Sequence record: PP496439.1
Direction: 5' to 3' (one strand)
DNA length: 64,000 nucleotides
Shown in pieces: positions 18,947 through 59,470 of the stretch; positions within the stretch are counted from its first letter, which is position 1, and every line of letters begins with the position of its first letter. The notes beneath the pieces are model-generated. The model ran no database searches. It was not told the origin of the DNA and was given only the letters and a program-made list of their open reading frames with translations. Made by a program: the position numbers and the translations under genes.

Positions 18947-19008
18947 AGCGTATAGCAATCGAATGCGTGGAATTAGCCCTTAACGGCGTCCCCACTAGTG
19001 GAGAACAC

Positions 19009-20487
19009 ATGAAATCTGTAGCCGTTGACTACCAAAAGATAGCCAAGGAATGCCAGTGCACCGAGCTGCCTTCCAAGGTAAGAGTTACTCGTGCACGGGT
19101 CTATCCAAACTTGAGGACGTGCCTACTCTTCCTCAAGTACGATGCCAAAGGTGAACTGGTACAAGCCGAGATCACTGCGCCGTACGACACGTCCACCGAG
19201 CCAAAGGTGAGGGTGCTCAAACATCCTGACAAGAAGTCCGACTTCCTTTCATTATATAGGGCGCTGATCCGCCACCAGATCATACCCGAGTCTATTCCGA
19301 AGAAAGGTAACGGGATTGCACCAACGCTGGAGGTCATCGGCACACTGGTGAGCCTGCTGCCGGAACGGGATGTCGAAACCTTCCGTACGCTGACCCCGGC
19401 CATCCAGACTGGCAGCGTCATGTACGTCCCGCTGGTCACGTCCCGGCCAATGCCCATGGTGCAACACTGGATACCTGTTGACCAGCATTCAGAGCTGGGC
19501 ATGATCGAGCTGGTCGATACGGATAGCAAGCCTTTCCTTAATCAGTGGGTCAACAGGTTGAGCAACACCGCCACTGGTTATGTGATCTACACCCCCGAAG
19601 GCTCACACGGTCAGGAACTAGCCTGCTTCCGGGTGCCCAATGTGCAAGGGGAGGAACTGTGTGTGGTCAAGAAGGTTGACTTCACCCTGACTGTTGCTCG
19701 CACGCTCAAGCCGGTACTGACTGTATCCACCAAGAGTACTCGGGCAGTGTCCCGCATTCCCCTACCCCACTATCTGATGCTGCGCAATCACCACATAAAG
19801 GTGGGCACGGTTATTTCCCTGCGTCGTAACGACCGAGGTGGGTTGGTGTACCATGAGACGGTGGCCGAGGAAGGCATGACGCCCCTGCCACTGTGCCCAC
19901 ACTGCCACAGTGGCTCTGTGCTGAGAGGTAGTAGCAATGACGTGTACTGCAATAACGATTCATGCCGAGGCCTAGCCATCGTGCGACTTCGCTACATCTT
20001 GAACAACAAGCTGGACGTCAAGTACCTGAGCGACAATAAGGTAACAGCGCTGATCAATGACAAGCAGGACCTGTTCAGCTTGCTTAAGACACCGACTCAC
20101 CTATTGCGGCACAGAGCGGGCTTCGGTGCACGTACGGTGGATGCGCTGGAAGAGAAGCTGAACACTATCGCCGGTCTTCCACTGCACACGCTGGCCGAGA
20201 TGTCCTGCGCTTTCTACAACGTGGGTGTGCCCCCGCTGGATGAGATGGTGTTCAAGAAGATCTTTTCCGTTATGTCGATTGACTACCTGAAAGCACTGCC
20301 CTCCACCGGTAAGATGTACAGCCAGTTGCTCGACATCGAAGGTATCCGCAACAACCGCGCAGTGGCTTTCCTTGCTGGCTGGCCTGCATTTCAACAGTGG
20401 ATGATAGACCTGAACGCTGCCCTACAGTCTCGCAGCGCAATCTCCTCCACGGTAAATAACCCGAAACAAATTCGAGGTGTGAAATGA
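19009..20487 (+). CDS. NAD-dependent DNA ligase homolog, probably catalytically inactive
   Basis: OB-fold segment (LKPVL...IKVGTVISLRR), CPHC...CNNDSC zinc finger and HhH (AGFGARTV) are present. No KxDG adenylation motif. Start revised to ATG 19009. Confidence 0.65.
   Translation: MKSVAVDYQKIAKECQCTELPSKVRVTRARVYPNLRTCLLFLKYDAKGELVQAEITAPYDTSTEPKVRVLKHPDKKSDFLSLYRALIRHQIIPESIPKKGNGIAPTLEVIGTLVSLLPERDVETFRTLTPAIQTGSVMYVPLVTSRPMPMVQHWIPVDQHSELGMIELVDTDSKPFLNQWVNRLSNTATGYVIYTPEGSHGQELACFRVPNVQGEELCVVKKVDFTLTVARTLKPVLTVSTKSTRAVSRIPLPHYLMLRNHHIKVGTVISLRRNDRGGLVYHETVAEEGMTPLPLCPHCHSGSVLRGSSNDVYCNNDSCRGLAIVRLRYILNNKLDVKYLSDNKVTALINDKQDLFSLLKTPTHLLRHRAGFGARTVDALEEKLNTIAGLPLHTLAEMSCAFYNVGVPPLDEMVFKKIFSVMSIDYLKALPSTGKMYSQLLDIEGIRNNRAVAFLAGWPAFQQWMIDLNAALQSRSAISSTVNNPKQIRGVK
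20452..20458 (+). promoter_or_regulatory. GTAAATR element upstream of queC-1
   Basis: GTAAATA about 25 nt before the ATG at 20484. Confidence 0.45.
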
Positions 20488-21248
20488 ACAATCAAAACAG
20501 AACTCGTATCGCTGTGCTTGTCGGCGGCGGTCTGGACTCACATGCGTACATGGTATTGAAAGCCGACCAGCCTCAGACAGACTTCATTCATGTGGACTAC
20601 GGCCAGCGGGTTGCAGTAGCCGAGAGAAACGCCGTGTTGCAAATGGCTGAGAAGCTGGGCATTGCCCGCAGCCGGGTGTACACGCTGATCTGCAACAAGA
20701 AGAATCACATGCGCAAGGTCAATGACGGTGTGGGTGTGTTGTTTGGCACCGGCCCGGTCGAGATGGACAATGCGTTTGTTAAGGGACGTAACCTGTTCCT
20801 GATTCAGAAGGCCATCGAGCTGGGCTACGGTCACGTGCACTTGACGCTGACCCAAGAGCGTGGCCGGATGTTCCCCGATGCCGATCTGGCATTCGTCCAG
20901 CTGGTTGACAACCTGATGCACCGCAGTTATGACGTGAGGGTATCCGCCCCCTACATCATGGAAGACAAGCATCGGGTGATGTTCAAGGCGTATCGGCATT
21001 GCCCCGAGTTCCTCGATATGTCTTTCACGTGCTGGGTAGGTCCTTATGTGGAATGTGGCACGTGCCCGCACTGCGTCAAGAAGGAAAAGATTCGAGCCGA
21101 GATGATCGTTGAGAAGATTGAATACGATCTCAGCAAGGATGAACGTGAGGCGCAGTGGGAGCAAGTCAAGGCAGGCTACGGCGACGCGTTGAAGCCCGCT
21201 GAGACCATCAACATGAACATTCAGGTTGTTGACGGAGGACTGAAATGA
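20484..21248 (+). CDS. queC: QueC-family ATP pyrophosphatase (paralog 1)
   Basis: GGGLDS PP-loop, DYGQR, FVKGRNL, FPD and TC...CGTCPHC zinc motif. Confidence 0.8.
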   Translation: MNNQNRTRIAVLVGGGLDSHAYMVLKADQPQTDFIHVDYGQRVAVAERNAVLQMAEKLGIARSRVYTLICNKKNHMRKVNDGVGVLFGTGPVEMDNAFVKGRNLFLIQKAIELGYGHVHLTLTQERGRMFPDADLAFVQLVDNLMHRSYDVRVSAPYIMEDKHRVMFKAYRHCPEFLDMSFTCWVGPYVECGTCPHCVKKEKIRAEMIVEKIEYDLSKDEREAQWEQVKAGYGDALKPAETINMNIQVVDGGLK

Positions 21249-21955
21249 ACAAGTTCTTAGGTTGGTTCAAGCGTCTGCTGGATAAGAAGCACAAGTCGAT
21301 CACGATGACGTTGACCGACGCCGAAGGTAAGTTGGTCACCATCCACATACCGCAAGGTGCGGGTGTCGAATACACGCTCTCGAAGTCGGGCACCCACTTG
21401 AACGTCTCAGTTAAAGACGACGTCTTCATGTTGCGCACGAATGGCGCTGGAGTCGGTGGCAGTGGAAGTTCCAAGCCCGGTCTCAACGGTGGCCCCGGCC
21501 ATACACCTATCCCCCGGTCCCCAAGCTTCACGGGCGCTGGTACGCCGAACTACGGTCACGCAGGCGACCCGCCTGTTGGTGCTCAAGCTTCGTTCCCTAT
21601 CGGCGCCCGAGCAACTGTTTCTGGTGGTGGGCGCGTTGGTGGCCTGTCAGGTGGAAGCGCAAACGGCACAATGGCTGGTGGTGGAGATGGCTTCGTTCCC
21701 TCTCCAATCCGTAGCTCTGATCGAGCTTACCTGATTAGAGGTTTGTATTACGTCATCACGACGAAGAAGATAACGGGAGAGCAATACCCGATCCATGAGC
21801 TTCTGCATTGGGGTAAGAAGTCAATCGAACTCATGGGCAAGTTCTCCACCGTCCGAGACGCTATCGACGAACTCAAATTGAAGACGGGTATCCCATTCGA
21901 AGACCTGACGGACTATCAGGTTGATTCCCTTCCCAAACGACTGTGCAAGCCTTGA
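21245..21955 (+). CDS. Gly/Pro-rich hypothetical protein
   Basis: 236 aa with an ATGA overlap and a central low-complexity linker. Confidence 0.65.
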   Translation: MNKFLGWFKRLLDKKHKSITMTLTDAEGKLVTIHIPQGAGVEYTLSKSGTHLNVSVKDDVFMLRTNGAGVGGSGSSKPGLNGGPGHTPIPRSPSFTGAGTPNYGHAGDPPVGAQASFPIGARATVSGGGRVGGLSGGSANGTMAGGGDGFVPSPIRSSDRAYLIRGLYYVITTKKITGEQYPIHELLHWGKKSIELMGKFSTVRDAIDELKLKTGIPFEDLTDYQVDSLPKRLCKP

Positions 21956-21959
21956 TCGG

Positions 21960-21966
21960 GTAAATG
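21960..21966 (+). promoter_or_regulatory. GTAAATR element upstream of the second QueC-like gene
   Basis: GTAAATGGTCCGTAACT, about 27 nt before the ATG at 21994. Confidence 0.55.
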
Positions 21967-21993
21967 GTCCGTAACTAATCCGGAGACACCAGC

Positions 21994-22812
21994 ATGACCA
22001 CTGCGCCCCCAAAGATTATCGTTGCATTCAGCGCCGGTACAGATTCAACTACAGCGGCCTACTACTATCGCAAGCTCGGCTATCAGGTAACGCTGGCCGT
22101 GTTCGATGACGGCGCATGCAACGATCCACTTGGCCCTCTGTACGATCCGAACAAGCCGAAGGACTTGACCAACTTCTCGGATGAGTTCTACGATTACGTA
22201 CGGATTCACCAAGAGCACACGGAAGGCCATCTTCAGTTCGACTTCGTGGAGATTCGTTATCCGCAACTCGCATTGCTGGAAGCCAACAAGACAGCCAAGC
22301 CCGGTCGGGACAATGCAGCAGCAGCAGAGGCTGACGGCTTGGGCTTCTGGGTCGGCTTCAAGGGCCTGATGGCAATGTTGCTGATGAGCCACGGCGCCGC
22401 CAATGGTTACGAGGCAGTAGTCTTCGGCCACATGCCGTACAACAACCATTACGAAGATGAGCTGCCCCAGAACTTCGAGCTGCTGCGTCAGTACATGGTT
22501 ACGGCCTATGGCAGCCGAGTGGAAATTCCTCAGATCTACCACCCATTCTATCGACCGAATTTCGATACCAAGGAAAAGGTTATTGAGCTGGCTCAGGCAA
22601 TCGGCGTGCCCTTGCGAGATACCTATTCGTGCCGCCGAGGTGAAGTAGAAACCCGAGGTATCCTCCTGCCACTTCTGCGTGGCGGTAACTCCAACTACGT
22701 GAGCCCCACCTACCGTTGGAAGCATTGTGGTACGTGTGAGAACTGTGTCGAACGCAAGCGAGCCTTCGCGGCGCTGGGCATGAAAGATCCTGCCCCTTAT
22801 ATGGAACATTGA
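21994..22812 (+). CDS. QueC-like ATP pyrophosphatase (paralog 2, divergent)
   Basis: FSAGTDS PP-loop, TKEKVIELAQAIGVPLRDTYSC, and HCGTCENCVERKRAF. Confidence 0.75.
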   Translation: MTTAPPKIIVAFSAGTDSTTAAYYYRKLGYQVTLAVFDDGACNDPLGPLYDPNKPKDLTNFSDEFYDYVRIHQEHTEGHLQFDFVEIRYPQLALLEANKTAKPGRDNAAAAEADGLGFWVGFKGLMAMLLMSHGAANGYEAVVFGHMPYNNHYEDELPQNFELLRQYMVTAYGSRVEIPQIYHPFYRPNFDTKEKVIELAQAIGVPLRDTYSCRRGEVETRGILLPLLRGGNSNYVSPTYRWKHCGTCENCVERKRAFAALGMKDPAPYMEH

Positions 22813-22813
22813 T

Positions 22814-23830
22814 ATGGCCCTTTCAATCTGGCCGCTGACCGAAGGTGAACTCGGTCAGGGCCTCGTCAACGAACTGAATCGTACCAGCAAGGCGCTGGTG
22901 AACCGGAGTATGTGGTCTTTGCCATTGCTCCGGCGTTTGTTTTATCGGCGCACCGAGATTGGTGTCCCGGAGCTACTCCACGTCTGTACCAGCATTCATC
23001 GGGGCAAGACTTACTTCTGCCTGTTGGTGAACTTCCGAGATGTGGTGATGGGCAACCCCGAGCAATACGGATGGGACCTAGCTGGCCGGTGGTTGTTCTA
23101 CGATGTGGATCTGCTGGATACCCCGGAGTTTAAACAGGTAAACGCGGCTATTCGTAAGGTGGCTACGGTCAACACGGTTACCTACGGTCAAGCATTCGTT
23201 CCGGATGAAGGTGGTATGGGGGAGGAGCACTGGATCAAGAAACTGAAAGGTAACTACCGCCCCCACATCTTCGGCGAAAAGTCAAAACAGGTTATCGTCA
23301 GTCAGACCTGCGGACACGCGGCTACTCACGTTCTGACCGAGGCAGTGATGTCATTCGGTATCCAGCGCGCTGAGAGATTTCTCGCGGAAGGTCAGTCGGA
23401 TGTCATGCCGGAGTTGTATGACCTACCCATGCAGCTAGCCGGTCTAGGCTCGATCCCTGGAACCCGGATTGGCACCGTGTCGCTCACCTGCCGGGATACC
23501 CGTGCGCTGATCGGTACCCTGTCGTTCTACGTTGTGGCAGGCTTGGGTCACAGTGATATCTTGTATATGCACGAGATGCTGATTGATCCGGATCCGAAGT
23601 GGAAGCCTCTATCGGTGGCCGTCAACTTGCACATTCAGGCAATCATGTATGTGCGCTATCTAAACAGCCGATCTGATCGGGCTTCGGACTTGGTTATCAA
23701 CCTCGGATTCAACTTGGACGAGAAGTACAACACATACAAAGAGGTGTTCCGTCCGAACAAGTCCGAAATGGAAATCTATACCGGCATGCACACCGAGCCC
23801 GGCGTCCCACTGTCCTGTTTCAAGGGGTAA
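22814..23830 (+). CDS. FemABX/GNAT-like (putative aminoacyl/acyl transferase) protein 1
   Basis: WIKKLKGNYRPHI segment and C-terminal INLGFNLDEKYNTYKEVF, a Fem-like (D/N)LG...YK..F pattern. Confidence 0.5.
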   Translation: MALSIWPLTEGELGQGLVNELNRTSKALVNRSMWSLPLLRRLFYRRTEIGVPELLHVCTSIHRGKTYFCLLVNFRDVVMGNPEQYGWDLAGRWLFYDVDLLDTPEFKQVNAAIRKVATVNTVTYGQAFVPDEGGMGEEHWIKKLKGNYRPHIFGEKSKQVIVSQTCGHAATHVLTEAVMSFGIQRAERFLAEGQSDVMPELYDLPMQLAGLGSIPGTRIGTVSLTCRDTRALIGTLSFYVVAGLGHSDILYMHEMLIDPDPKWKPLSVAVNLHIQAIMYVRYLNSRSDRASDLVINLGFNLDEKYNTYKEVFRPNKSEMEIYTGMHTEPGVPLSCFKG

Positions 23831-23833
23831 GAC

Positions 23834-24835
23834 ATGTACACTCCGTATTCCCAAAACAGTCTGATGCAATCGATCCCGTTGGATGACCAAGGTACATTCG
23901 CCCATCCGCCGTATACGATGGAAGGAGAGTTAACCGACGTGTGGACGAACCCCAACCTATATGGGTTCGTCAGCCTGTTGAACGGCCAGAGCAATAGCCG
24001 GGCCTATCGAGACTGGATGACCACCCACAATCTTCCAGCACTGTTCCTCGGTCCGCATCATGAAGACAACTTCTGGTTTGAATTCAGCACTGGTCTCTAT
24101 TCCAACTGCACGCTGGATTACAACGAGATCAACGTCCAAGGCAACCTGCAGGACTTCCTTGGGAGATTGACGTCATCTCGCCGTCGCTCCGTGCTCAAGG
24201 CAAAGGAAACGGATACAATGATCCACAAGGCAGGCTCGGTAGCCAACTTCAACCTGTATCATCCGGTGGAGGGTAGGCTGTATAGTCTTACCGCGATTCA
24301 CGAACGCCGGGTGATGAAAGATATTTCAGAGTTTATCGAATCGAAACTTTGGAGTATGAAGCAGACGCCTACTGACCTCACGTACGGGGCATTCACCACT
24401 CTGATGGACTACATCCGGTTGAAGCAGCGAGAGGATACGCCACTCGGCCACCTACTGCGCGCCGTTCATCTATTGGTCATTCGAGACGAACGTTCAGGGT
24501 TTATCGTGTCGGTACACCTGGTGGCGATCAACACGTTGAAAGATGATCGCCATAATCCTATCAAGACCTACTTGCACTCCTTTGCGCGCATCACTGTTCT
24601 CCCTGCACGTATCGCCCTACTCGCGTTGATCAAGGTGGTTCAAGAGTTAAACGTCACTAGTCAGTACGCGTCCCGTACACTGGCGAAGATTGACTATCTT
24701 GACGTGAGCAACGTGGTGCTGTCCGAGCGAGAGCAGTACAAGTCGGACTTCTTCACCGGCAAATGCCAAGTGCGTGCGTGGGCATCCCCGGCGCTGCTGG
24801 AACGACAGTTACCTTTCGTTACGCCGATCCCGTAA
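23834..24835 (+). CDS. FemABX/GNAT-like protein 2
   Basis: LQDFLGRLTSSRRRSVLKA and C-terminal YLDVSNVVLSEREQYKSDFF. Confidence 0.55.
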   Translation: MYTPYSQNSLMQSIPLDDQGTFAHPPYTMEGELTDVWTNPNLYGFVSLLNGQSNSRAYRDWMTTHNLPALFLGPHHEDNFWFEFSTGLYSNCTLDYNEINVQGNLQDFLGRLTSSRRRSVLKAKETDTMIHKAGSVANFNLYHPVEGRLYSLTAIHERRVMKDISEFIESKLWSMKQTPTDLTYGAFTTLMDYIRLKQREDTPLGHLLRAVHLLVIRDERSGFIVSVHLVAINTLKDDRHNPIKTYLHSFARITVLPARIALLALIKVVQELNVTSQYASRTLAKIDYLDVSNVVLSEREQYKSDFFTGKCQVRAWASPALLERQLPFVTPIP

Positions 24836-24839
24836 CTCT

Positions 24840-24846
24840 GTAAATG
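24840..24846 (+). promoter_or_regulatory. GTAAATR element
   Basis: Intergenic, about 43 nt before the ATG at 24890. Confidence 0.5.
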
Positions 24847-24889
24847 ATGGGAACAGCCCCACCATCACTTCATCTCTAGGGTAGTTCCC

Positions 24890-25942
24890 ATGCAAGACTT
24901 CGATAAGATAATGATCGATAGTAGTTTGACATCCAATCTGGTGTACGCAGGGTTGGGTAACTTGATCACGCCCCGCGCACTTGACCTGCTGATCGAACAT
25001 CAGGCTGCACTGGAAAACGTATACGCCAATCTGGAAACAGCGTATCAGATTACCCCACCCTTCCCCTGTGAAGCTGCATTCAATTACCCTGACAAAGATC
25101 CTGTGCTGGTCGCCGACTATCTGAATGCTACTCCCGCCATCCGTTGCGGAGAGCTGGCTGGATTCGAGGCAAAGCCCGGCAGTTACTACCATGCGCCCGC
25201 CGCTGGTATCTCCCCGGAACATCGCATCGACGTACGTGGTATGTCTTTGCGTGAGTTCGACCACTATCTGGTTGAGCGTAAGGAAGTATCCCGTATCACT
25301 ACCAATCTGGTGGCCGACAAGTTCCGCTGTGAGACGCATGTGTACAAAGTGGATGAAGATCATATCCTGATCCATGACGCCGAACGAGTTGGGATCAGCC
25401 AGACGGACTTCCGCCGCATGTGGGCGCAGACCCGCCGCCGGGAAATCGCTGAAAACTATCTGCAGTACATGCCCATCGAAGACTCCGCCAAGGATGATCA
25501 GGTGGTGCGACTGATCAACGAAGACGTAGCACGGGTGTTAGCCCAGAACGTCGACTACGACCGCATGATTCCGCCCGAGCTGATCTTCGATGGTCAGGGC
25601 AAGCCGGTGCTGACCGTGCTGAAAGATTGCAACGCCAAGGTGTTGGGCATTGGTGTGTACGTCATCTACAAGTCAGCTGACCCAGAGCATGACAGCGAAC
25701 TGCACTGGCGTGGCGCTTTCTACGATCACGAAGATCCTCGCGTAGCATCCATGGGCATTGAACACGCTCTGGTTGCCAGCGCACTGCACACAGCGTACGC
25801 CTGCAACGCGGTCCTCTATCTGACCAAGGCACCTAAGTCCGTGTGTGACGCATGGAAGACGGAAGTGCACCAAGGTTACGGGCTGGTCCGTAATGCGATG
25901 CCGGAACTGTCTGACACCCCTTACATTCTGGCTATCCAGTAA
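24890..25942 (+). CDS. FemABX/GNAT-like protein 3 (weakest match)
   Basis: SLREFDHYLVERKE segment, and a C-terminal GNAT-like strand/helix pattern ending LYLTKAPKSVCDAWK. Confidence 0.4.
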   Translation: MQDFDKIMIDSSLTSNLVYAGLGNLITPRALDLLIEHQAALENVYANLETAYQITPPFPCEAAFNYPDKDPVLVADYLNATPAIRCGELAGFEAKPGSYYHAPAAGISPEHRIDVRGMSLREFDHYLVERKEVSRITTNLVADKFRCETHVYKVDEDHILIHDAERVGISQTDFRRMWAQTRRREIAENYLQYMPIEDSAKDDQVVRLINEDVARVLAQNVDYDRMIPPELIFDGQGKPVLTVLKDCNAKVLGIGVYVIYKSADPEHDSELHWRGAFYDHEDPRVASMGIEHALVASALHTAYACNAVLYLTKAPKSVCDAWKTEVHQGYGLVRNAMPELSDTPYILAIQ

Positions 25943-25955
25943 ATAGCCGGTAACT
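25939..25955 (+). promoter_or_regulatory. Extended GTAAATR element
   Basis: GTAAATAGCCGGTAACT, 16/17 identical to the copy at 55744. Confidence 0.6.
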
Positions 25956-25975
25956 CCATCCATTGAGGTACTTCC

Positions 25976-28060
25976 ATGAAATCCGTGAACCCCATCTTCA
26001 AACACGTTCCCCAGTTCGACTGGCCTGTCATTCCCCGTGCGCAGTGGGAAGAGATCGTCAAGGGAAAAGAGCATGTGATGTTCGACTCCTTCTCGCAGCT
26101 CGCTCAAGTGTTGGCTATCCCGGTGAGCAGTTACCAGTTCTACTTCGAAGATGGGTCCACGTTGTTCGCCGGTCCCGAAGCAACCTTCACCGCCGCGCCG
26201 TACCCGCTGTATCAGGACCTTGAATTCGTCCTGACCCCTGACGAGACGTTGGTGCCGGGTCTTGCACTGGATACCAAACCGTGGGGCCTGTACACCGACG
26301 AATGGGTGGACAACTACGAAGGTGCGGACAAGGAAGACATCGGCAACAAGACCGGGTTCGAATTCATTCCGCTGTCGGACGCCTTGAAACTGGTGGTCCT
26401 CAACACGGAGACCATGCAGCTCCAGTACACTGCAATCGAGAGCTTCACGTACGACGGCGTGACTTACGTATACCTGCTGGCCGATGGCGTGTGCTGGGTA
26501 CTGGCGGGCAAGTCCGGTGGTCTGGTTGCCAGCGAGCATGACAAAGGTGCTGCGTTCATCATGGTGTCCCATCCCGAGTTCGCCGGGTGCAGCGTAGACA
26601 ACATGTACCCAAGTGAGTTCGGTGAAGCGGAAGCGACGTTCTACGTTCAAGACGAGGAACACAATTACCTGGACGCGGCTAACCGCATCTTCGAGGAAGC
26701 CAAGGACGTAGGCGCTGGCACTTTCCTGACCATTGAGACCGGGGATGGACTGCCGACGGCACTGGCCTACAACCTGCGTTACAGTGACGTGGCCCACGTT
26801 AACCTGCCGATGCACAACATCCACCAGTTCACGTCTCTTCACGTACGACTGGGCGAGACGCCTAACTTCTCCGAGGCCCCGGAAGCGTGCCGCATGAAAG
26901 AGGTGATGGAGTACCTGGCGGACCCCGAGTCCCCGGTAGACCATTACTGGTCTGCCATCATGGTACTGGAGAAGAACTTCCCCGGTTTCGCCGACGCCCT
27001 GAAAGACTCCAGTGTCCCAACCCGTGACATCGTGCACTCCAAACAGGCGTTCAGCTTGGAGATCGATCGCCAGTTCGGCAAGGAAGTGGCAAGCAAGATC
27101 GGCCTGAACACTGGCGTATTCGCCCAAGTGAAAGACCGTGATGAGTGGCTGACCCGTCAAGACGATTTTCCTACCGACAAGGTGGCCGTCAAGTACAACA
27201 CCAAACACTTCATCGGCATCTTCGACAAGGACGAGGTATCGAATTCCATCAACATGTGGCTGGCCGGTCAACCCGGAGAGTCGCTGATGATCGAAGAGTA
27301 CTTCGGTGAGGGCAATCAGGAATTCAACCTGTGCTATGTGATCAACGAAGAGTTCGTGCAGCCGACGCTGTTCCTGTGCGAAGTCAACAAGATCCTCGGT
27401 AATGACACCGGCGGCAAAGGTGGCAACACGCTGGCCTGCCATGATGCTCGTATTAACAAGTACCCTGAGTTCTTTGAGCCGGTCAATGCTGCGCTTGCTA
27501 ACCTGCATGAGCACGTGGAAGGTGTGAAGGGCTGGGTTGACCTGAGCTTCATGGTCCGCGACGGCATCCCTTACTTCACAGAGTGGTGCATTCGAATTGG
27601 CTGCTCCAACAACGCCACCATCGTGCGCCAGATGGAGACCCCGCTCGACGTTCTGCTGACCAACGTGGTTAACAAGGTGCATACCGAGCTGTCTTGGAAG
27701 CACTCCATGTCTGTCAGCGTGGACATCTACAGCATGCCGCTGTCCGCAGGCAATGATGCCAACATGCAGTTCACCGAGTCGCTGACCACGCCGGTCGAGA
27801 TGGTGTCCCCGCTCAATCTGGAACTGGCGGCGGAGAGTTTCTTCGACCCGATTGATTCGGCCTGGAACGCGGTGTACGACGGCTACATTGTCGAGGCGTA
27901 CAACCGATATGGCACCGTCTCGGGGTATTCCACCAACTGGAACTTCGCCTGCAATGCGGCGTACAATCACTTGAAAGATCAGTCGGTGTTGTACGGGGCA
28001 TACCGCGAAGCGCCTGCCCACCACGACCCACTGACTCTGTTCCCTTTCCTCAAGGCGTAA
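25976..28060 (+). CDS. ATP-grasp amide ligase, PurD (GAR synthetase)-like C-terminal half, with unknown N-terminal domain
   Basis: VAVK, LMIEEYFGEGNQEF, NKILGNDTGGKGGNT, and GWVDLSFMVRDGIPYFTEWCIRIG (compare PurD V.EFN.RFG). Confidence 0.65.
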   Translation: MKSVNPIFKHVPQFDWPVIPRAQWEEIVKGKEHVMFDSFSQLAQVLAIPVSSYQFYFEDGSTLFAGPEATFTAAPYPLYQDLEFVLTPDETLVPGLALDTKPWGLYTDEWVDNYEGADKEDIGNKTGFEFIPLSDALKLVVLNTETMQLQYTAIESFTYDGVTYVYLLADGVCWVLAGKSGGLVASEHDKGAAFIMVSHPEFAGCSVDNMYPSEFGEAEATFYVQDEEHNYLDAANRIFEEAKDVGAGTFLTIETGDGLPTALAYNLRYSDVAHVNLPMHNIHQFTSLHVRLGETPNFSEAPEACRMKEVMEYLADPESPVDHYWSAIMVLEKNFPGFADALKDSSVPTRDIVHSKQAFSLEIDRQFGKEVASKIGLNTGVFAQVKDRDEWLTRQDDFPTDKVAVKYNTKHFIGIFDKDEVSNSINMWLAGQPGESLMIEEYFGEGNQEFNLCYVINEEFVQPTLFLCEVNKILGNDTGGKGGNTLACHDARINKYPEFFEPVNAALANLHEHVEGVKGWVDLSFMVRDGIPYFTEWCIRIGCSNNATIVRQMETPLDVLLTNVVNKVHTELSWKHSMSVSVDIYSMPLSAGNDANMQFTESLTTPVEMVSPLNLELAAESFFDPIDSAWNAVYDGYIVEAYNRYGTVSGYSTNWNFACNAAYNHLKDQSVLYGAYREAPAHHDPLTLFPFLKA

Positions 28061-28063
28061 TCC

Positions 28064-29227
28064 ATGAGCACTCCATTCCAAGAGTTCACCCTAGAAGGGT
28101 GGATTCGCTACATGAGAGATGAAAGCATCATCTGGCGCGCGTACGCTGATGGTCATCCGGATAAGGTCGAGTTCAGCCCGGAGTGGCGTGACGAGATGTA
28201 TCGGTTGATGGTGCAGTTCAAAGATCTGCTGCCGATGTCGTTTTCCAATCCGGTGTACGGCTTCACTGAAGGTTGGCTGGAAGGGCTCGGACTCCAGCCC
28301 TTTTATGGCGATGATCCGTTCAATCCGATGGTGCAACCGCTTAGCCACCCTCTGGTGCATGTGGGGCTTCCGTTTACTCTGAGCGAGCTGACGGCGGGCG
28401 TATGGGACTGTCAGTCCCTGAGCGCTCACCTGGAGCGTCCGCTGCTGGTCGATACATTCGAACCGATCCCAGTGCCATCTATTAGCCTGGACGCTTACAA
28501 AGCCGTCCTGACCGTACGGGACCGGGAAGAGATCGTGATGAGTGCGGGAACCCCGGTGAACTACTTCCTCTGGTTGAATAGTCCGATCACCGAACTCAAA
28601 GACGACTTCGACGTTTATCTGGCCAGCCTGACCAAGAAGCGCCGCTACAAAGTGAAGCAGGCACTGGCGACAGTGGGCACCGAAGAGAACCCGGCTATCA
28701 GCGTCAGTACTGGATCTCGTTTCGGCGAAGGGTTGTTGTCCGATCAGGTGAACAGCATCCTCGCGACTTTCGAAGATCCGGTGGACATCGAGTGCATGCT
28801 TCTTCAGCTGCTGTTCGGGGTGGCAACCTGCAATACCCATCCGCATCTTGTCGATCTGGTTTGTGCAGACCAGCAGTTGGGGATCTTCATCAAGCGCAAC
28901 GGCCACACGATGAATTTCCTCTACAACCGTGACCCGGACAACCGCGCTGACTCAGGCATCAACCTGCTGACCCAGTACGTGCGCCATCTGCACATGAACC
29001 GCCCGGAAGGTGTGATGTACGTGGACCCGACATGTCGATATCGGCCTGACGAGGACAGTATGAACACCTACAAGCGGGTGATCACCAACGAGAACCGGTA
29101 TCACCCAATGCCGTTCGTCTCGGCTGACCCTGCGCATATTGAAGGTGTGATTACCCCGGCGTTCATTGCAGGTCATTGGCAGATGTCGGCGTCCAATGGC
29201 CCGGCCAATCCTGAGATGATGGAGTAA
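28064..29227 (+). CDS. FemABX/GNAT-like protein 4
   Basis: DDFDVYLASLTKKRRYKVKQA is the clearest Fem-like motif. C-terminal YVDP...NTYKRVI. Confidence 0.6.
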   Translation: MSTPFQEFTLEGWIRYMRDESIIWRAYADGHPDKVEFSPEWRDEMYRLMVQFKDLLPMSFSNPVYGFTEGWLEGLGLQPFYGDDPFNPMVQPLSHPLVHVGLPFTLSELTAGVWDCQSLSAHLERPLLVDTFEPIPVPSISLDAYKAVLTVRDREEIVMSAGTPVNYFLWLNSPITELKDDFDVYLASLTKKRRYKVKQALATVGTEENPAISVSTGSRFGEGLLSDQVNSILATFEDPVDIECMLLQLLFGVATCNTHPHLVDLVCADQQLGIFIKRNGHTMNFLYNRDPDNRADSGINLLTQYVRHLHMNRPEGVMYVDPTCRYRPDEDSMNTYKRVITNENRYHPMPFVSADPAHIEGVITPAFIAGHWQMSASNGPANPEMME

Positions 29228-29229
29228 CC

Positions 29230-30177
29230 ATGGCAAAGCACAAGGTCAAAAGGTTGGAAATCAACCACATCTACGACTTCTACCCGTTGTATCAGGTGAT
29301 GTACGGGCGTGGCATGGAGACCAAAGCGTTCGAGGTCTCCAAGTTCGCCAAGATGGTGCTGGACTTCGAAGCATCAACCAGTACTCGCCGGAAGTGGGAC
29401 GTGCTGGAACCTTTCAGCGGTATCAGCGAGCATGAACACTTCTTCGCTGCGACCGGCCTGAACATCGAGCATTACACCGGCATGGACATCGTGGTTCCAG
29501 ATGGAGCCAAAAACGTCATTCAAGGCGACATCATCACCGACACCCTTCCGTTTCACGTCAACGCGGTGTTCGCCTTCTACTACAGCTTGCAGAATGTACG
29601 GGACGCCAAGACTGGCATGCACACGCGGGAAAAGCTGGTGGAGTTCTTCGACAACATCCTCGGCCATCTGCAAGTCAATGCGAACAAGAGCCGTATGCCC
29701 GCAGTGTTCGCTTTCCACCTTGACCAGCCTGAAGACCCTAATTACTATCTGACGTCCCGTGCCGACGTTGGAGGTGAACAGTCATGGACCGCACCCGCGT
29801 GTGGTCTGCTGGGGCAGTGGGTCAAGTGCAAACCGACTGACACTCTGGAAGTGAAGTGCAATCTGGACACCTGGTACAACCGTGTGCAGTGCACCGCGTA
29901 CGATCAGGCGGAGGATATCCAGATTCTGGTAAATGGGCGAGTAGTGGCGACCGTTGAGATCGAACAGCCGTTCACTCATCGGGTCTGGACCGAGCATGAG
30001 GTGATCGACATCCTGCGGGGTCTGGACTACAATCTGCACTTCCACATGTACAACGGCACCATCTCCAATTACGACTTCTTGATGACCCGTTTGGAAGACA
30101 AGCCCGTTCCCGGCTATGAAGAGGCTAATACTAATCAGATGACAACTGATATGCTGGTTGTCGTTAATCCGAGGTAA
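29230..30177 (+). CDS. Class I SAM-dependent methyltransferase-like protein A
   Basis: VLEPFSG (motif I), GMDI, IQGDI and AVFAFYYSL. Confidence 0.65.
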   Translation: MAKHKVKRLEINHIYDFYPLYQVMYGRGMETKAFEVSKFAKMVLDFEASTSTRRKWDVLEPFSGISEHEHFFAATGLNIEHYTGMDIVVPDGAKNVIQGDIITDTLPFHVNAVFAFYYSLQNVRDAKTGMHTREKLVEFFDNILGHLQVNANKSRMPAVFAFHLDQPEDPNYYLTSRADVGGEQSWTAPACGLLGQWVKCKPTDTLEVKCNLDTWYNRVQCTAYDQAEDIQILVNGRVVATVEIEQPFTHRVWTEHEVIDILRGLDYNLHFHMYNGTISNYDFLMTRLEDKPVPGYEEANTNQMTTDMLVVVNPR

Positions 30178-30179
30178 TA

Positions 30180-31097
30180 ATGGCTAAGCCCAAGATCCCT
30201 ACACGAACCATCCCCACGTTGTACCAAGACTGGGGGTTGTACAGCGCCATCTGCGAACTGCCGCAGGAGACGATGCTGATGATGTCGCGCTTCGTGGCAG
30301 ACCGGACCATCGAACATGCCGAGCGCCATGACCTGGAAAGTGTGGCGATCATGGAGCCCTTTAGCGGGCCGATCCCGTATTACGAGCCAGACATCCGAAG
30401 CTTCCTGACTCGCGCCCGTGTTGACCTGGATACGTACGATCATGTCGAGTACCTTGATCATGGTGGATTGTCGGAAGACAACAATATCATCATCGGTGAC
30501 ATCACCACCATCGACCTGAAACAGAAATACGACGTCATCTACGGCAGTTACGGCAGCTTGGCCTGCCTGCTGCTGGATCACACGCACAACAAAGCTTACG
30601 AGAAGTCGCACGCGGCGCTGGTCAACATTCGCGAGCACCTGAAACCCAACGGCATCTTCGTCCTGAACGCCAACGGATCCAGCGAAAGCCTGCTGAATAA
30701 CCTGTTGAACTCCGATGAGCCGGATCAAGAGATTCGCGTCCGTCCGGGATCGCAGTTGGGCAAGGCGTTCCGAATCAAACCAGACAGTAACGCGCTGCTT
30801 CGTTTCTCCTACAACGTGGAGTACGACCGACGCACCACCTGCACCATGTGCCACTACAGCGATATGGTGCTGTCTGTAAATGGAGTTGACATCCAGCGCT
30901 GGGAGGTGGAATCCCCGACGTATCTTGCGCCGCTGGATGAACCCGAACTAATTCGAATGGCAGGTATGGCTGGTTTCAATCTGGAAAACACTGAGTTCTA
31001 CGGATTGGACACCACCGGTTATCCTGCCTTCTTCAAAATGGATACGGTCTGCGACGGGTCATGGTCACCCGCCGAGTTCGTAGTCTTTCGCACCTAA
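30180..31097 (+). CDS. Class I SAM-dependent methyltransferase-like protein B
   Basis: IMEPFSG, IIGDI, YDVIYGSYGSL and HLKPNGIFVLN. Confidence 0.7.
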   Translation: MAKPKIPTRTIPTLYQDWGLYSAICELPQETMLMMSRFVADRTIEHAERHDLESVAIMEPFSGPIPYYEPDIRSFLTRARVDLDTYDHVEYLDHGGLSEDNNIIIGDITTIDLKQKYDVIYGSYGSLACLLLDHTHNKAYEKSHAALVNIREHLKPNGIFVLNANGSSESLLNNLLNSDEPDQEIRVRPGSQLGKAFRIKPDSNALLRFSYNVEYDRRTTCTMCHYSDMVLSVNGVDIQRWEVESPTYLAPLDEPELIRMAGMAGFNLENTEFYGLDTTGYPAFFKMDTVCDGSWSPAEFVVFRT

Positions 31098-31107
31098 CGA
31101 GGTTCCT

Positions 31108-32343
31108 ATGAGCGTTATCATCCCCACCGTAGCGATGGAGAGTGGTCAGCCAGACATGATCATTCAAGGCTGTTCCACGGGTCGCCTCTCTATGGCCGAG
31201 CCTAACGAGAGCGCCAAACCTAAGTCTTCCAAGAAGCTGTACGAACGTGAAGACCTGATGGCGTACGACAGCGAGTCGGAGCACTGGCAGAAGCAGTTGG
31301 CCCGCCGCTACGCTCACCACGGTGAGATGGTCGGTGTGTTGAACAACGTCGAGGTGGTGCCGGAAGCCACCTATCAGAACTTCGACATGAAGATCACCCC
31401 GTACACCGCGCAGTTGATGGACCAGAACGACCCCAACTGCCCGATCCGTTTGCAGTACATGCCGACCAATAAAGAGCTGGAGTCGATTCAGCGCGAAGAG
31501 ACCATGCACAACGAGCTGGGCGAGGAAGAGGACACCATCCCCGGTACCTCGGTCGTGCATCGCTACCCGCGTCGTGTCTTGTTCCTGACCACTACCCAAT
31601 GCGCCAGCTTCTGCCGTTACTGCACCCGTGCACGCATAGTCTCCCACGGCGGCGAAGCGGCGATCACCAAGAAGCACCTTGACGCCAGCATCGACTACAT
31701 CGCCGGGAACAAGGACATCGAAGACGTGCTGCTGTCCGGCGGTGACCCGTTCATCCTCCCAGACAACAAGCTCGACGAGATCCTCGGTCGTATCCGTGCT
31801 GAAGCACCTCACGTTCGCTTCCTGCGTATTGGTAGCCGACTGCCGGTCCAGATGCCGACTCGTATCACTCCAGAGCTGTGCGAGATTCTGGAACGCCACA
31901 ATGTCAACATGGTCAACATCCATGTGAACCATCCGAAAGAAGTAACCCCTCTGCTGGCCTCCCGGATGAAGATGTTGCGCAAAGCTGGCGTGATGATCGG
32001 CAATCAGGCCGTCATGCTGAAAGGCGTGAACGACTCCATCCAGGTGATGACCGAGCTGTGCTTGCGTATGGTCGAGATGGGCGTCCGTCCGTACTACGTC
32101 TACTCCAACGATCCGGTGGCCCAGGCCGCACACTTCACCGTGTCGCTGAAAGAGATGCTGAATATCAACGAGGGTATGCGTGGCTTCCTGTCTGGCCCGG
32201 CTATGCCAACCTTCGTGGTAGACGGCGTGGGTGGCTTGGGCAAGATGCCGGTGCAGAAAGAGTACGTCGGCTTCGATAAGAACGGCGGTATCTTCGCCCA
32301 GAACTTCGAAGGGAAAACGGCCCGCATGCCCCATCTGGAATAA
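31108..32343 (+). CDS. kamA: Lysine 2,3-aminomutase (radical SAM/PLP)
   Basis: HRYPRRV, CASFCRYCTR, SGGDP, RIGSR, NHPKE, NQAVMLKGVND, PYYVYSND and FVVDGVGGLGK. Confidence 0.92.
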   Translation: MSVIIPTVAMESGQPDMIIQGCSTGRLSMAEPNESAKPKSSKKLYEREDLMAYDSESEHWQKQLARRYAHHGEMVGVLNNVEVVPEATYQNFDMKITPYTAQLMDQNDPNCPIRLQYMPTNKELESIQREETMHNELGEEEDTIPGTSVVHRYPRRVLFLTTTQCASFCRYCTRARIVSHGGEAAITKKHLDASIDYIAGNKDIEDVLLSGGDPFILPDNKLDEILGRIRAEAPHVRFLRIGSRLPVQMPTRITPELCEILERHNVNMVNIHVNHPKEVTPLLASRMKMLRKAGVMIGNQAVMLKGVNDSIQVMTELCLRMVEMGVRPYYVYSNDPVAQAAHFTVSLKEMLNINEGMRGFLSGPAMPTFVVDGVGGLGKMPVQKEYVGFDKNGGIFAQNFEGKTARMPHLE

Positions 32344-37117: not shown

Positions 37118-37810
37118 ATGGCGAGCACGCTGGGCATTAAAGAAGCACAAGACATACTGGGGCTGGAACCGGGCGCTGACCTTGCCGATGTCAAAAAGGC
37201 CGTACGCAAGCTGTGTCAGAAGTTCCACCCGGACAAGGAAGGCGGCGACCCTGAGATGTTCCGGCGTGTGCGGGAAGCCGGGGAAGTGCTGGAGGAAATT
37301 CTGGCGGATCACGACATCATCCCAAATGAAGAATACCTGGACGCGCTCAGCTACGTCATCACCATGCTTGGCCAGAAGTACGTGGCGGCTGAGATGAACG
37401 GGATGAATGCCCGGCGTCGTGTCGCGATCAAGATGACCAACGACGTGTTCAGCTTCCACAACCTGCAGCAAGCGGCTTTCGCAGCGGCAGCACCACCCAG
37501 TGCAGAGTCCTACGTGTTGAACGAACTCGAACAAGAGATCAAAGTCAACATCGATGAGTTCGACGCCTCAATCGAACGGCACTCCGTTCAGGGTAAAGGG
37601 CTACGAATGCTGATGCAGAACATGCGGGCGCCTAAGATGGCGTACTCCGTGTGGCAAGACGCTCGGGACTCCTTGGCGCAGGCCATTCGCCAGCAACGCA
37701 ACAACATCCGCATGGCTAAGCTCAGGTTGCAAGCACTGCAAGAGTTCGAAGCCATCCAGCACAAGCGTAAGCAGGAAGCCATTCGTCTGGCTCACGGGGT
37801 GCGTTCATGA
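37118..37810 (+). CDS. J-domain protein
   Basis: ILGLEPGADLADVKKAVRKLCQKFHPDKEGG with an intact HPD motif, and a helical C-terminus. Confidence 0.85.
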   Translation: MASTLGIKEAQDILGLEPGADLADVKKAVRKLCQKFHPDKEGGDPEMFRRVREAGEVLEEILADHDIIPNEEYLDALSYVITMLGQKYVAAEMNGMNARRRVAIKMTNDVFSFHNLQQAAFAAAAPPSAESYVLNELEQEIKVNIDEFDASIERHSVQGKGLRMLMQNMRAPKMAYSVWQDARDSLAQAIRQQRNNIRMAKLRLQALQEFEAIQHKRKQEAIRLAHGVRS

Positions 37811-58729: not shown

Positions 58730-59470
58730 ATGGCTATTGATGCACATAAGTATCCGTTGTTGGCGGCGGCTCAAGACCGACTCATCGAGTCTGGTCAGCG
58801 CTATTTTGCGAATGACAATATCCATCCGGTATTTGAATACCTGGACAACATGGCATTGCCTATGCCAGTCGGGGCTCAGACACTGGAGCAGATGAAGGAG
58901 GCTGTTCAAGAGAAGTACGGCGAGCTGCTGGAACTCCTCTTGATCGATTGGGCTGCGGATCATAACTCCGAAGGTACCCCGCGCCGTGTCGCCAAGATGC
59001 TGGTCGAGGAAACCTACAAGGGTCGCTATCAGCCGACGCCGAAGATCACCGCGTTCCCCAACGACAGCAAGCGTACCCAGATGATCGTGATCGGGCCGCT
59101 GCGCGTTGAGAGCCAGTGCAGCCATCACCATCAGAACATCCGGGGCTGGGCATGGGTCGGTGTTATGCCGTCGGAAGATGGTACACTGATCGGTCTGTCG
59201 AAGTTCAGCCGCCTACTTGATCATATCTGCCGCCGTCCTCAGATCCAAGAGGAAATGGTTGCTCAGGTGTGTCACCAGTTGAACGATCTGGTCAAGGACA
59301 ACCTCGGTGTCGCGGTCGTGATCAACGCAGAGCACCAGTGCATGGCCGTTCGGGGCGTGCAAGAGCCGTGTGCCCAAACCGTTACGTCGGAGATGCTGGG
59401 TGCGTTCCTCGAACCTGGTGTTCGTCAGGAGTTCCTGACCTACGTGCAAATGAACCCAGCCCCGTGCTAA
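58730..59470 (+). CDS. folE: GTP cyclohydrolase I
   Basis: TPRRVAKM, SQCSHHH, GLSKFSR, RRPQIQEE and AEHQCMAVRGV. Confidence 0.93.
   Translation: MAIDAHKYPLLAAAQDRLIESGQRYFANDNIHPVFEYLDNMALPMPVGAQTLEQMKEAVQEKYGELLELLLIDWAADHNSEGTPRRVAKMLVEETYKGRYQPTPKITAFPNDSKRTQMIVIGPLRVESQCSHHHQNIRGWAWVGVMPSEDGTLIGLSKFSRLLDHICRRPQIQEEMVAQVCHQLNDLVKDNLGVAVVINAEHQCMAVRGVQEPCAQTVTSEMLGAFLEPGVRQEFLTYVQMNPAPC

Follow-up and report, generated by a model that had tools for sequence, protein, structure and literature searches.

A PurD-like ATP-grasp ligase of Pseudomonas phage vB_PpuM-Amme-1, coupled to a lysine aminomutase homologue and tentatively assigned to 7-deazaguanine hypermodification of DNA

The final 64 kb of sequence record PP496439.1 (64,000 nucleotides, hereafter the window), from Pseudomonas phage vB_PpuM-Amme-1 (Amme-1), a 202-kb jumbo myovirus whose host is P. 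putida, contains the gene Amme1_00196 (Table 1). Our analyses led us to conclude that its product is a rare, genuine, phage-restricted offshoot, with a new role, of PurD, the glycinamide ribonucleotide (GAR) synthetase (EC 6.3.4.13). The ligase always travels with a lysine-rearranging enzyme and with 7-deazaguanine genes, and thus a beta-lysine-type side chain on a modified DNA base is its most likely product. We favor, with a probability of about 0.45, the reading of the protein as an ATP-dependent amide ligase by which a beta-lysine-type diamino acid becomes part of the side chain of a 7-deazaguanine, the base then entering DNA.

The likeness to PurD is well beyond chance. The NCBIfam purD model (TIGR00877) matched residues 354–586 of the ligase (E 3.7e-7, 29.3 bits), and a profile built from 28 members of the family matched ten PurD crystal structures in the PDB, the top match being residues 16–426 of 5vev (E 3.2e-22). 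In the AlphaFold2 model, the region from about residue 226 to residue 694 was predicted with confidence. A Foldseek search with this model gave PurD as the first 14 among the matches listed (E about 1e-19, best 1.4e-19). VIA-align superposed residues 248–693 of the model on residues 1–421 of Bacillus subtilis PurD (2xcl) with a Z score of 29.0 and a root-mean-square deviation of 3.2 Å over 395 of the 421 residues, and there was a clear drop to the next classes (biotin carboxylase, PurK, and PylC; Z ~21). At least 500 PDB matches of the ATP-grasp type were found at E<=1e-3, among them PurD, biotin carboxylase, PurK, PurT, PylC, and L-amino-acid ligases. Foldseek and VIA-align on the model thus revealed an ATP-grasp fold with its B-domain lid and the four-domain N-B-A-C arrangement of PurD. 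The single sequence was less informative: a scan of the 694-aa protein against Pfam (E<=0.01, including GARS) and PHROG gave no match, and a PDB search with the ligase alone was borderline (E 0.06). The omega value of the core, compared with the orthologue in phage Peetri, was 0.11.

These results bear on an initial annotation made from the sequence of the window alone, which had described the C-terminal ~300 residues as GAR-synthetase-like and had proposed a structural check of both halves of the protein. The two motifs it quoted, NDTGGKGGNT (residues 476–485) and EWCIRIG (residues 536–542), are present in the protein, the similarity to PurD is significant, and the check returned a PurD-type ATP-grasp fold for the core part. 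The extent has to be corrected, because the similar region includes the PurD-type N domain and therefore spans residues ~246–694 (~450 residues).

The pattern of conserved residues suggests an active enzyme that has departed from GAR synthetase. Across 28 relatives, E362, R365, K406, E469, G479, K481, D522, E536, R540, and R644 are invariant or nearly so. Among the PurD motifs, the family retains L-E..K/R (E362 and R365) and the D-H-K-R-like segment E-x-N-K/R (E469). Of the catalytic motif E-F-N-x-R-F-G-D-P-E, only E536, R540, and G542 are retained in the ligase; the asparagine is replaced with cysteine here or with methionine, and D-P-E is replaced with C-S-N. The glycine-rich loop of the PurD B domain is lost throughout the family. 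The position of the G-G-R-E-H-A motif, which takes part in substrate binding in the N domain of PurD, reads G-D-G-L-P-T-A in the ligase and is variable among the relatives. D522 lies one strand before the E536/R540 motif. PurK and PurT possess two acidic Mg ligands (Asp and Glu) and function without the canonical asparagine, and by analogy D522 and E536 could be the two acidic Mg ligands in the ligase.

The score of 29.3 bits is far below the curated TIGR00877 cutoff of 288, and GARS_A was touched by only 3 of the 28 relatives (best E 2e-4). The 12 kb on either side of the ligase gene contain no annotated pur genes, bearing out an observation of the initial annotation, and none occurs in any examined locus of the relatives. 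Judging from these sequence features, the ligase appears not to be a GAR synthetase and looks no longer able to make purines. The earlier proposal of a repurposed amide ligase distinct from plain PurD is therefore well supported: the fold and catalytic residues of PurD are kept, its N-domain motif and thresholds are not reached, and the gene resides in a conserved non-purine cassette.

An exhaustive HMMER search against 1.84 billion representative proteins (E<=1e-3) found only 31 representative relatives, none of which is a bona fide PurD. A word-index protein search with the ligase returned only three relatives, and a scan of IMG/VR with the family alignment returned none. The relatives are 20–40% identical and occur as long forms of ~650–745 residues and short forms of ~416–480 residues. 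The ligase family is thus tiny and confined to phages. Gene contexts were tabulated by iterative hidden Markov model searches for Vibrio phage GR11A and twelve metagenomic contigs; nine loci of at least 9.9 kb are referred to as the long loci.

The most constant and best conserved partner of the ligase (50–60% identity) is a KamA-like protein, a homologue of lysine 2,3-aminomutase, which depends on radical S-adenosylmethionine (SAM) and pyridoxal phosphate (PLP). In all nine long loci, its gene is found no more than ~5 kb from the ligase gene. In a set of 50,697 phage records, the only phages with a KamA-like gene at >=50% identity were the 11 that also carry the ligase. The Amme-1 protein matches lysine 2,3-aminomutase (2A5H) with an E value of 7.5e-79 and keeps R134, D293, D330, and the PLP lysine K337. 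These residues bind the carboxylate and the epsilon-ammonium group of lysine, and glutamate 2,3-aminomutase has others in their place. The locus of one relative (contig L019, 13090–15377) additionally encodes the alpha subunit of the B12-dependent lysine 5,6-aminomutase (607.8 bits; curated cutoff, 600) with the beta subunit next to it. These genes follow the ligase gene and one further gene, and a KamA-like gene and a GNAT gene stand alongside. Beta-lysine is a substrate of lysine 5,6-aminomutase in lysine fermentation. The locus therefore provides independent evidence for a lysine-derived diamino acid as the building block of the pathway, and suggests that in this relative the building block is 3,5-diaminohexanoate. 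The beta-lysine that had been guessed from the Amme-1 sequence gains strength from the KamA-like gene in every long locus, the retained D293 and D330, and this second aminomutase.

We propose the following mechanism. An ATP-grasp ligase that stems from the PurD lineage and is no longer specific for the GAR-synthetase reaction would use ATP to convert a carboxylate into an acyl-phosphate, and attack by an amine would yield an amide, as in PurD. The substrate would most likely be beta-lysine itself or a form of it that has been methylated, acetylated, or 5,6-rearranged, supplied by the KamA-like aminomutase, and through the amide the diamino acid would enter a side chain borne by a 7-deazaguanine base. 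In the likeliest geometry, the carboxylate of the diamino acid would be joined to an amine of the base or of the growing chain, comparable to the joining of glycine to phosphoribosylamine by PurD. We favor this activation of the diamino acid carboxylate because of the glycine parallel, because the cassettes contain amine-capping enzymes, and because QueC-like enzymes are the natural activators of a deazaguanine carboxylate. The remaining steps would be performed by the QueC-like, Fem-like transferase, and N-methyltransferase-like enzymes of the operon, and the DpdA-like transglycosylase would insert the finished base into DNA. The acidity of the ligase suggests that its substrate is a small intermediate, such as the free base, and not DNA. 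That the ligase is an active amide ligase other than PurD and is coupled to the aminomutase is probable. A more detailed scheme is tentative: beta-lysine would be attached to a 7-deazaguanine precursor and the chain then extended and capped by the Fem-like and N-methyltransferase-like enzymes, with N-acetyl-beta-lysine or 3,5-diaminohexanoate taking its place in relatives. What the data show is the fold, the conserved catalytic residues, the lost PurD motifs, and the near-obligate linkage of the ligase gene to a lysine aminomutase gene; we infer the substrates, the direction in which the amide is formed, and the arrival of the product in DNA.

Several points weigh against the assignment to a DNA 7-deazaguanine. 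The gene neighborhood cannot show which of the two partners contributes the carboxylate. Catalysis may differ from that of canonical ATP-grasp enzymes, because the canonical asparagine and the glycine-rich B-loop of PurD are missing from the whole family. The entire ligase is acidic (pI ~4.2–4.8), which suits a small-molecule substrate better than DNA. The equipment for 7-deazaguanine in Amme-1 is also imperfect: both QueC-like proteins score far under the TIGR00364 cutoff, the match of the DpdA-like protein is weak (29 bits, summed), and QueD is doubtful. A search for QueF in Amme-1 found none, and an aminomethyl acceptor (preQ1) would therefore have to be supplied by the host. The searchable full-text literature contains no report of modified DNA in these phages. 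The source paper of Amme-1 mentions nothing on DNA modification. According to the methods of one study, a standard kit for phage DNA gave an unusually low yield from these G3 jumbo phages (PMC7616413), which may or may not relate to modified DNA.

The same ligase chemistry might instead serve a product other than a DNA base, either a free small molecule, such as a nucleoside-like inhibitor or a conjugate of beta-lysine in N-acyl or N-methyl form, or a modified protein or tRNA, comparable to the beta-lysylation of elongation factor P (EF-P) by EpmA/EpmB. Such a product would agree with the acidic character of the ligase, with the known occurrence of KamA-type enzymes in compatible-solute, antibiotic, and EF-P pathways, with the top folds of the 387-aa neighbor (streptothricin-type aminoacyl-tRNA-dependent peptide synthases, which have a small amino-sugar substrate), and with the resemblance of the methyltransferase-like proteins to small-molecule amino-sugar N-methyltransferases. 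We nevertheless consider it rather unlikely, since every genome seen has the cassette inside a module of DNA replication and nucleotide genes, the cassette includes QueC-like genes, and the phages also carry FolE and DpdA-like genes. A small-molecule intermediate would, moreover, be fully in keeping with a DNA base if DpdA inserts the finished base later. A reversed orientation of the amide is improbable: beta-lysine would then provide the attacking amine, and the carboxylate activated by the ligase would be that of 7-carboxy-7-deazaguanine, an intermediate of the pathway whose carboxylate is free, or that of some other acid. ATP-grasp enzymes can activate many carboxylates, and the PurD N-domain motif for the amine substrate has been lost, both of which would suit this orientation. 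However, the QueC-like PP-loop enzymes of the cassette are the natural activators of that very carboxylate, the amine-capping enzymes (N-methyltransferase-like and GNAT) suggest decorated beta-lysine amines with the carboxylate left for the link, and CmoY, a known ligase of a DNA-base carboxylate, is also a PP-loop enzyme (PMC12783734).

The loss of the canonical asparagine and the glycine-rich B-loop could indicate that the protein is catalytically dead and serves only as a scaffold for the other enzymes of the pathway, with the variable N-terminal extension as a docking module. This is very improbable, because the Lys, Asp, Glu, and Arg expected in an ATP/Mg site are invariant among relatives that are only 20–40% identical, and because PurK and PurT work without that asparagine. 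An ordinary GAR synthetase, acting as an auxiliary purine gene that raises the nucleotide supply, is scarcely credible in spite of PurD being the top structural and profile match. The bit score is about one-tenth of the cutoff, the whole family has lost GGREHA, the A-domain asparagine and D-P-E, and the B-loop, neither a bona fide PurD among the 31 relatives nor a pur context was found, and the linkage to KamA-like genes is strict.

The initial annotation had also assigned the first ~380 residues to an acidic, unrecognized domain that selects the substrate. The region is indeed acidic (pI 4.2; 34 Asp and Glu versus 11 Lys and Arg) and unrecognized, but since the PurD-like region starts at residue ~246, its length is ~245 residues. 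Whereas AlphaFold resolved the core half, its model of this extension is unconfident (predicted local distance difference test score, pLDDT, below 50 at residues 27–225), with no recognizable fold. An atlas search with residues 1–226 gave no usable match, comparisons among the extensions of different subgroups by BLAST and hhalign detected no similarity, and hhalign comparison with the other operon proteins found nothing. About half of the family, the short forms, lack the extension. Its first ~100 residues are conserved (41–45% identity) solely in the two closest metagenomic relatives. The omega value versus the Peetri orthologue is 0.10 for the whole extension and 0.02 for residues 1–100, indicating purifying selection. 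Sequence constraint thus marks the extension as a genuine module specific to its lineage. A role in substrate selection is unlikely, because the extension, although constrained, is missing or unrelated in many relatives, and the earlier proposal is not supported; docking or regulation is a more probable function than determining a chemistry that the whole family shares.

Comparison with known systems helps to place the ligase. PurD shares with it the four-domain ATP-grasp architecture, the order of the motifs that hold the Lys, the Glu, the Arg, and the Arg of the C domain, and presumably the route from an amino-acid carboxylate through an acyl-phosphate to an amide. The ligase differs in being only 14–18% identical, in carrying the extension, in its linkage to KamA-like and QueC-like genes, and in the absence of a purine context. 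In the PylB/PylC pair, the carboxylate of an unusual diamino acid produced by a radical-SAM lysine mutase is likewise joined to an amine by an ATP-grasp ligase, but PylB is not KamA-like, PylC is smaller and is not the closest fold, and the acceptor is free lysine. EpmB/EpmA and AblA/AblB, responsible for the beta-lysylation of EF-P and for N-epsilon-acetyl-beta-lysine, respectively, combine a KamA-family aminomutase with a dedicated enzyme that consumes beta-lysine. In several relatives' loci, GNAT acetyltransferase genes adjoin the KamA-like genes. Unlike the ligase, EpmA is a paralogue of lysyl-tRNA synthetase and not an ATP-grasp enzyme, and the targets of the Epm and Abl systems are a protein and a free osmolyte.

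The nearest precedent from phage DNA is CmoY of phage S-B43, an ATP-dependent amide ligase that produces a 5-carboxymethylcytosine-glycine amide on DNA (PMC12783734). Both cases would concern amino-acid amide formation in the hypermodification of a phage DNA base; CmoY is, however, an asparagine-synthetase-like, AMP-forming PP-loop enzyme that acts on cytosine and is nearer to the QueC-like genes of the operon (PMC12783734). The known phage 7-deazaguanine pathways consist of DpdA, FolE, QueD, QueE, and QueC together with DpdL, DpdM, and DpdN (PMC10516641, PMC6884629). Amme-1 resembles them in possessing FolE, QueE-like, QueC-like, and DpdA-like genes, but they are without ATP-grasp, KamA-like, and Fem-like enzymes (PMC10516641, PMC6884629), and none of the eight described phage 7-deazaguanine derivatives bears an amino acid (PMC10516641). 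Thymidine hypermodification employs amino-acid:DNA transferases and a spore-photoproduct-lyase-like radical-SAM enzyme but no enzymes of the ATP-grasp or KamA type (PMC8989533). The radical-SAM enzyme of this pathway in phage M6 was checked for a KamA-like character and proved to be spore-photoproduct-lyase-like. Searches of full-text literature yielded no description of KamA or ATP-grasp enzymes in connection with deazaguanine or DNA modification, and the hypermodification pathway around the ligase is probably undescribed.

If the favored reading is true, large phages have recruited a purine-biosynthesis enzyme for a new class of base decoration, a lysine-derived, amide-linked side chain on 7-deazaguanine. 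The product would be the first case, in any DNA, of a 7-deazaguanine with an amino acid or peptide attached. It would raise the known 7-deazaguanines to nine, the newcomer being chemically much larger than the others, and the pathway would bring the first ATP-grasp and KamA-type enzymes, perhaps also tRNA-dependent transferases, into DNA hypermodification. The cationic DNA adduct would likely be relevant to the evasion of restriction, CRISPR, and glycosylase defenses. Amme-1 and its host P. putida KT2440/PaW85 are culturable, and the prediction is directly testable.

Table 1. Features of the ligase, its operon, and the 7-deazaguanine genes of Amme-1 (window positions unless stated otherwise)
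Feature	Position	Strand	Remarks
PurD-like ATP-grasp ligase gene Amme1_00196	25976..28060	+	ATG-to-stop open reading frame (ORF), 694 aa; annotated as hypothetical protein
N-terminal extension, aa 1-245	25976..26710	+	acidic; without recognized fold or family
PurD-like core, aa 246-694	26711..28057	+	N, B, A, and C domains; from VIA-align and profile match to 5vev
Core domains (approximate): N, aa 246-381; B, aa 382-444; A, aa 445-585; C, aa 586-694		+	boundaries inferred from VIA-align alignment with PurD 2xcl
K406	27191..27193	+	family-invariant; aligns with ATP-phosphate-binding Lys in the V-I-K strand of PurD
Glycine-rich loop, aa 476-485	27401..27430	+	PNTGGMG-like; G479 invariant, K481 and G483 nearly so
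D522	27539..27541	+	nearly invariant; Tyr in PurD; candidate first Mg ligand
A-domain catalytic motif, aa 536-542	27581..27601	+	E536 and R540 invariant; canonical Asn replaced with Cys (with Met in most relatives)
R644	27905..27907	+	nearly invariant; aligns with Arg of the PurD C-domain G-R-I/V-L motif
KamA-like lysine 2,3-aminomutase homologue, 411 aa	31108..32343	+	radical-SAM/PLP; TIGR03820 E 8e-93; KamA subfamily above cutoff
Candidate Fem-like aminoacyl-tRNA-dependent transferase, 387 aa	28064..29227	+	GNAT fold; directly downstream of ligase; model pLDDT 65
Two paralogous class-I SAM methyltransferase-like genes, 315 and 305 aa	29230..31097	+	resemble amino-sugar N,N-dimethyltransferases
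QueC-like PP-loop ATPases, 254 aa (20484-21248) and 272 aa (21994-22812)	20484..22812	+	divergent; 236-aa orphan between them
Orphan, 338 aa	22814..23830	+	language-model features like Mig-14, Acetyltransf_6, and LPG_synthase_C (Fem/MprF-like GNATs); a lead only
QueE-like protein, 323 aa	55790..56761	+	Fer4_12 E 1.7e-6; matches only in the N-terminal cluster-binding region
FolE (GTP cyclohydrolase I)	58730..59470	+	first step of 7-deazaguanine synthesis; PF01227 E 3.8e-39
TGT/DpdA-like ORF, 456 aa	record PP496439.1, 81781-83151		PF01702 29.3 bits summed versus cutoff 26.3; TIGR00449 E 6.5e-7

The ligase gene belongs to a tightly packed run of twelve plus-strand genes (18967–32343) flanked by a helicase and by topoisomerase II, and in every genome seen the cassette is located in the replication module beside topoisomerase II. 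A Shine-Dalgarno sequence, GAGGT (25965–25969), is placed 6 nucleotides ahead of the ATG, and 33 bp separate the gene from its upstream neighbor. When the operon was scanned for promoters and terminators, no signal exceeded chance.

Foldseek with the model of the 387-aa protein gave Sbb17/Sba18, FemX, and MprF as the top matches (E 1.3e-4 to 3e-3, TMt ~0.39), which is moderate evidence for a Fem-like transferase. The methyltransferase-like family is found in seven loci, and its profile (A2) matched DesVI (3bxo, E 6.9e-6) and TylM1 (E 6e-3). GNAT acetyltransferases occur in several relatives' loci. The QueC-like pair matched PF06508 with E values of 6.9e-19 and 2.8e-12, and QueC-like genes are part of the cassette in eight loci. 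Among the 338-, 333-, and 350-aa proteins, Fem/MprF-like language-model matches were obtained for the 338-aa protein only, and hhalign showed no visible paralogy of the three with the 387-aa protein.

The FolE, QueE-like, and DpdA/TGT-like genes are scattered, away from the operon. QueE models matched the 323-aa protein with an E value of 2.9e-9, the match being restricted to residues 4–37. Amme-1 may depend on its host for steps in 7-deazaguanine synthesis. GR11A has the same 7-deazaguanine gene set.

Some further features were observed in the window and in the related loci. On the plus strand of the ligase gene stands the only frame with homologues and a confident fold, and an antisense open frame of 802 aa that spans the whole gene (25673–28081, minus strand) is therefore probably a mechanical artifact, a by-product of codon and GC structure. 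One contig (L011, 192–2548) apparently has two tandem PurD-like genes, of 478 and about 328 residues. Another (L013, 1835–3394) contains thymidylate-synthase-family genes, possibly including a pyrimidine hydroxymethylase, a few kilobases upstream of the cassette, and this phage may carry a second base modification. On contig L019, the topoisomerase II is interrupted by an intein. The first gene of the Amme-1 operon (506 aa, 18967–20487) shows a weak, partial match to LigA, the NAD-dependent DNA ligase (residues 309–408, E 4.8e-6), and its GR11A counterpart is annotated as a DNA ligase. Downstream of topoisomerase II in the window, a 230-aa DnaJ-domain protein (37118–37810; PF00226, E 7e-11) is encoded beside a polynucleotide kinase.

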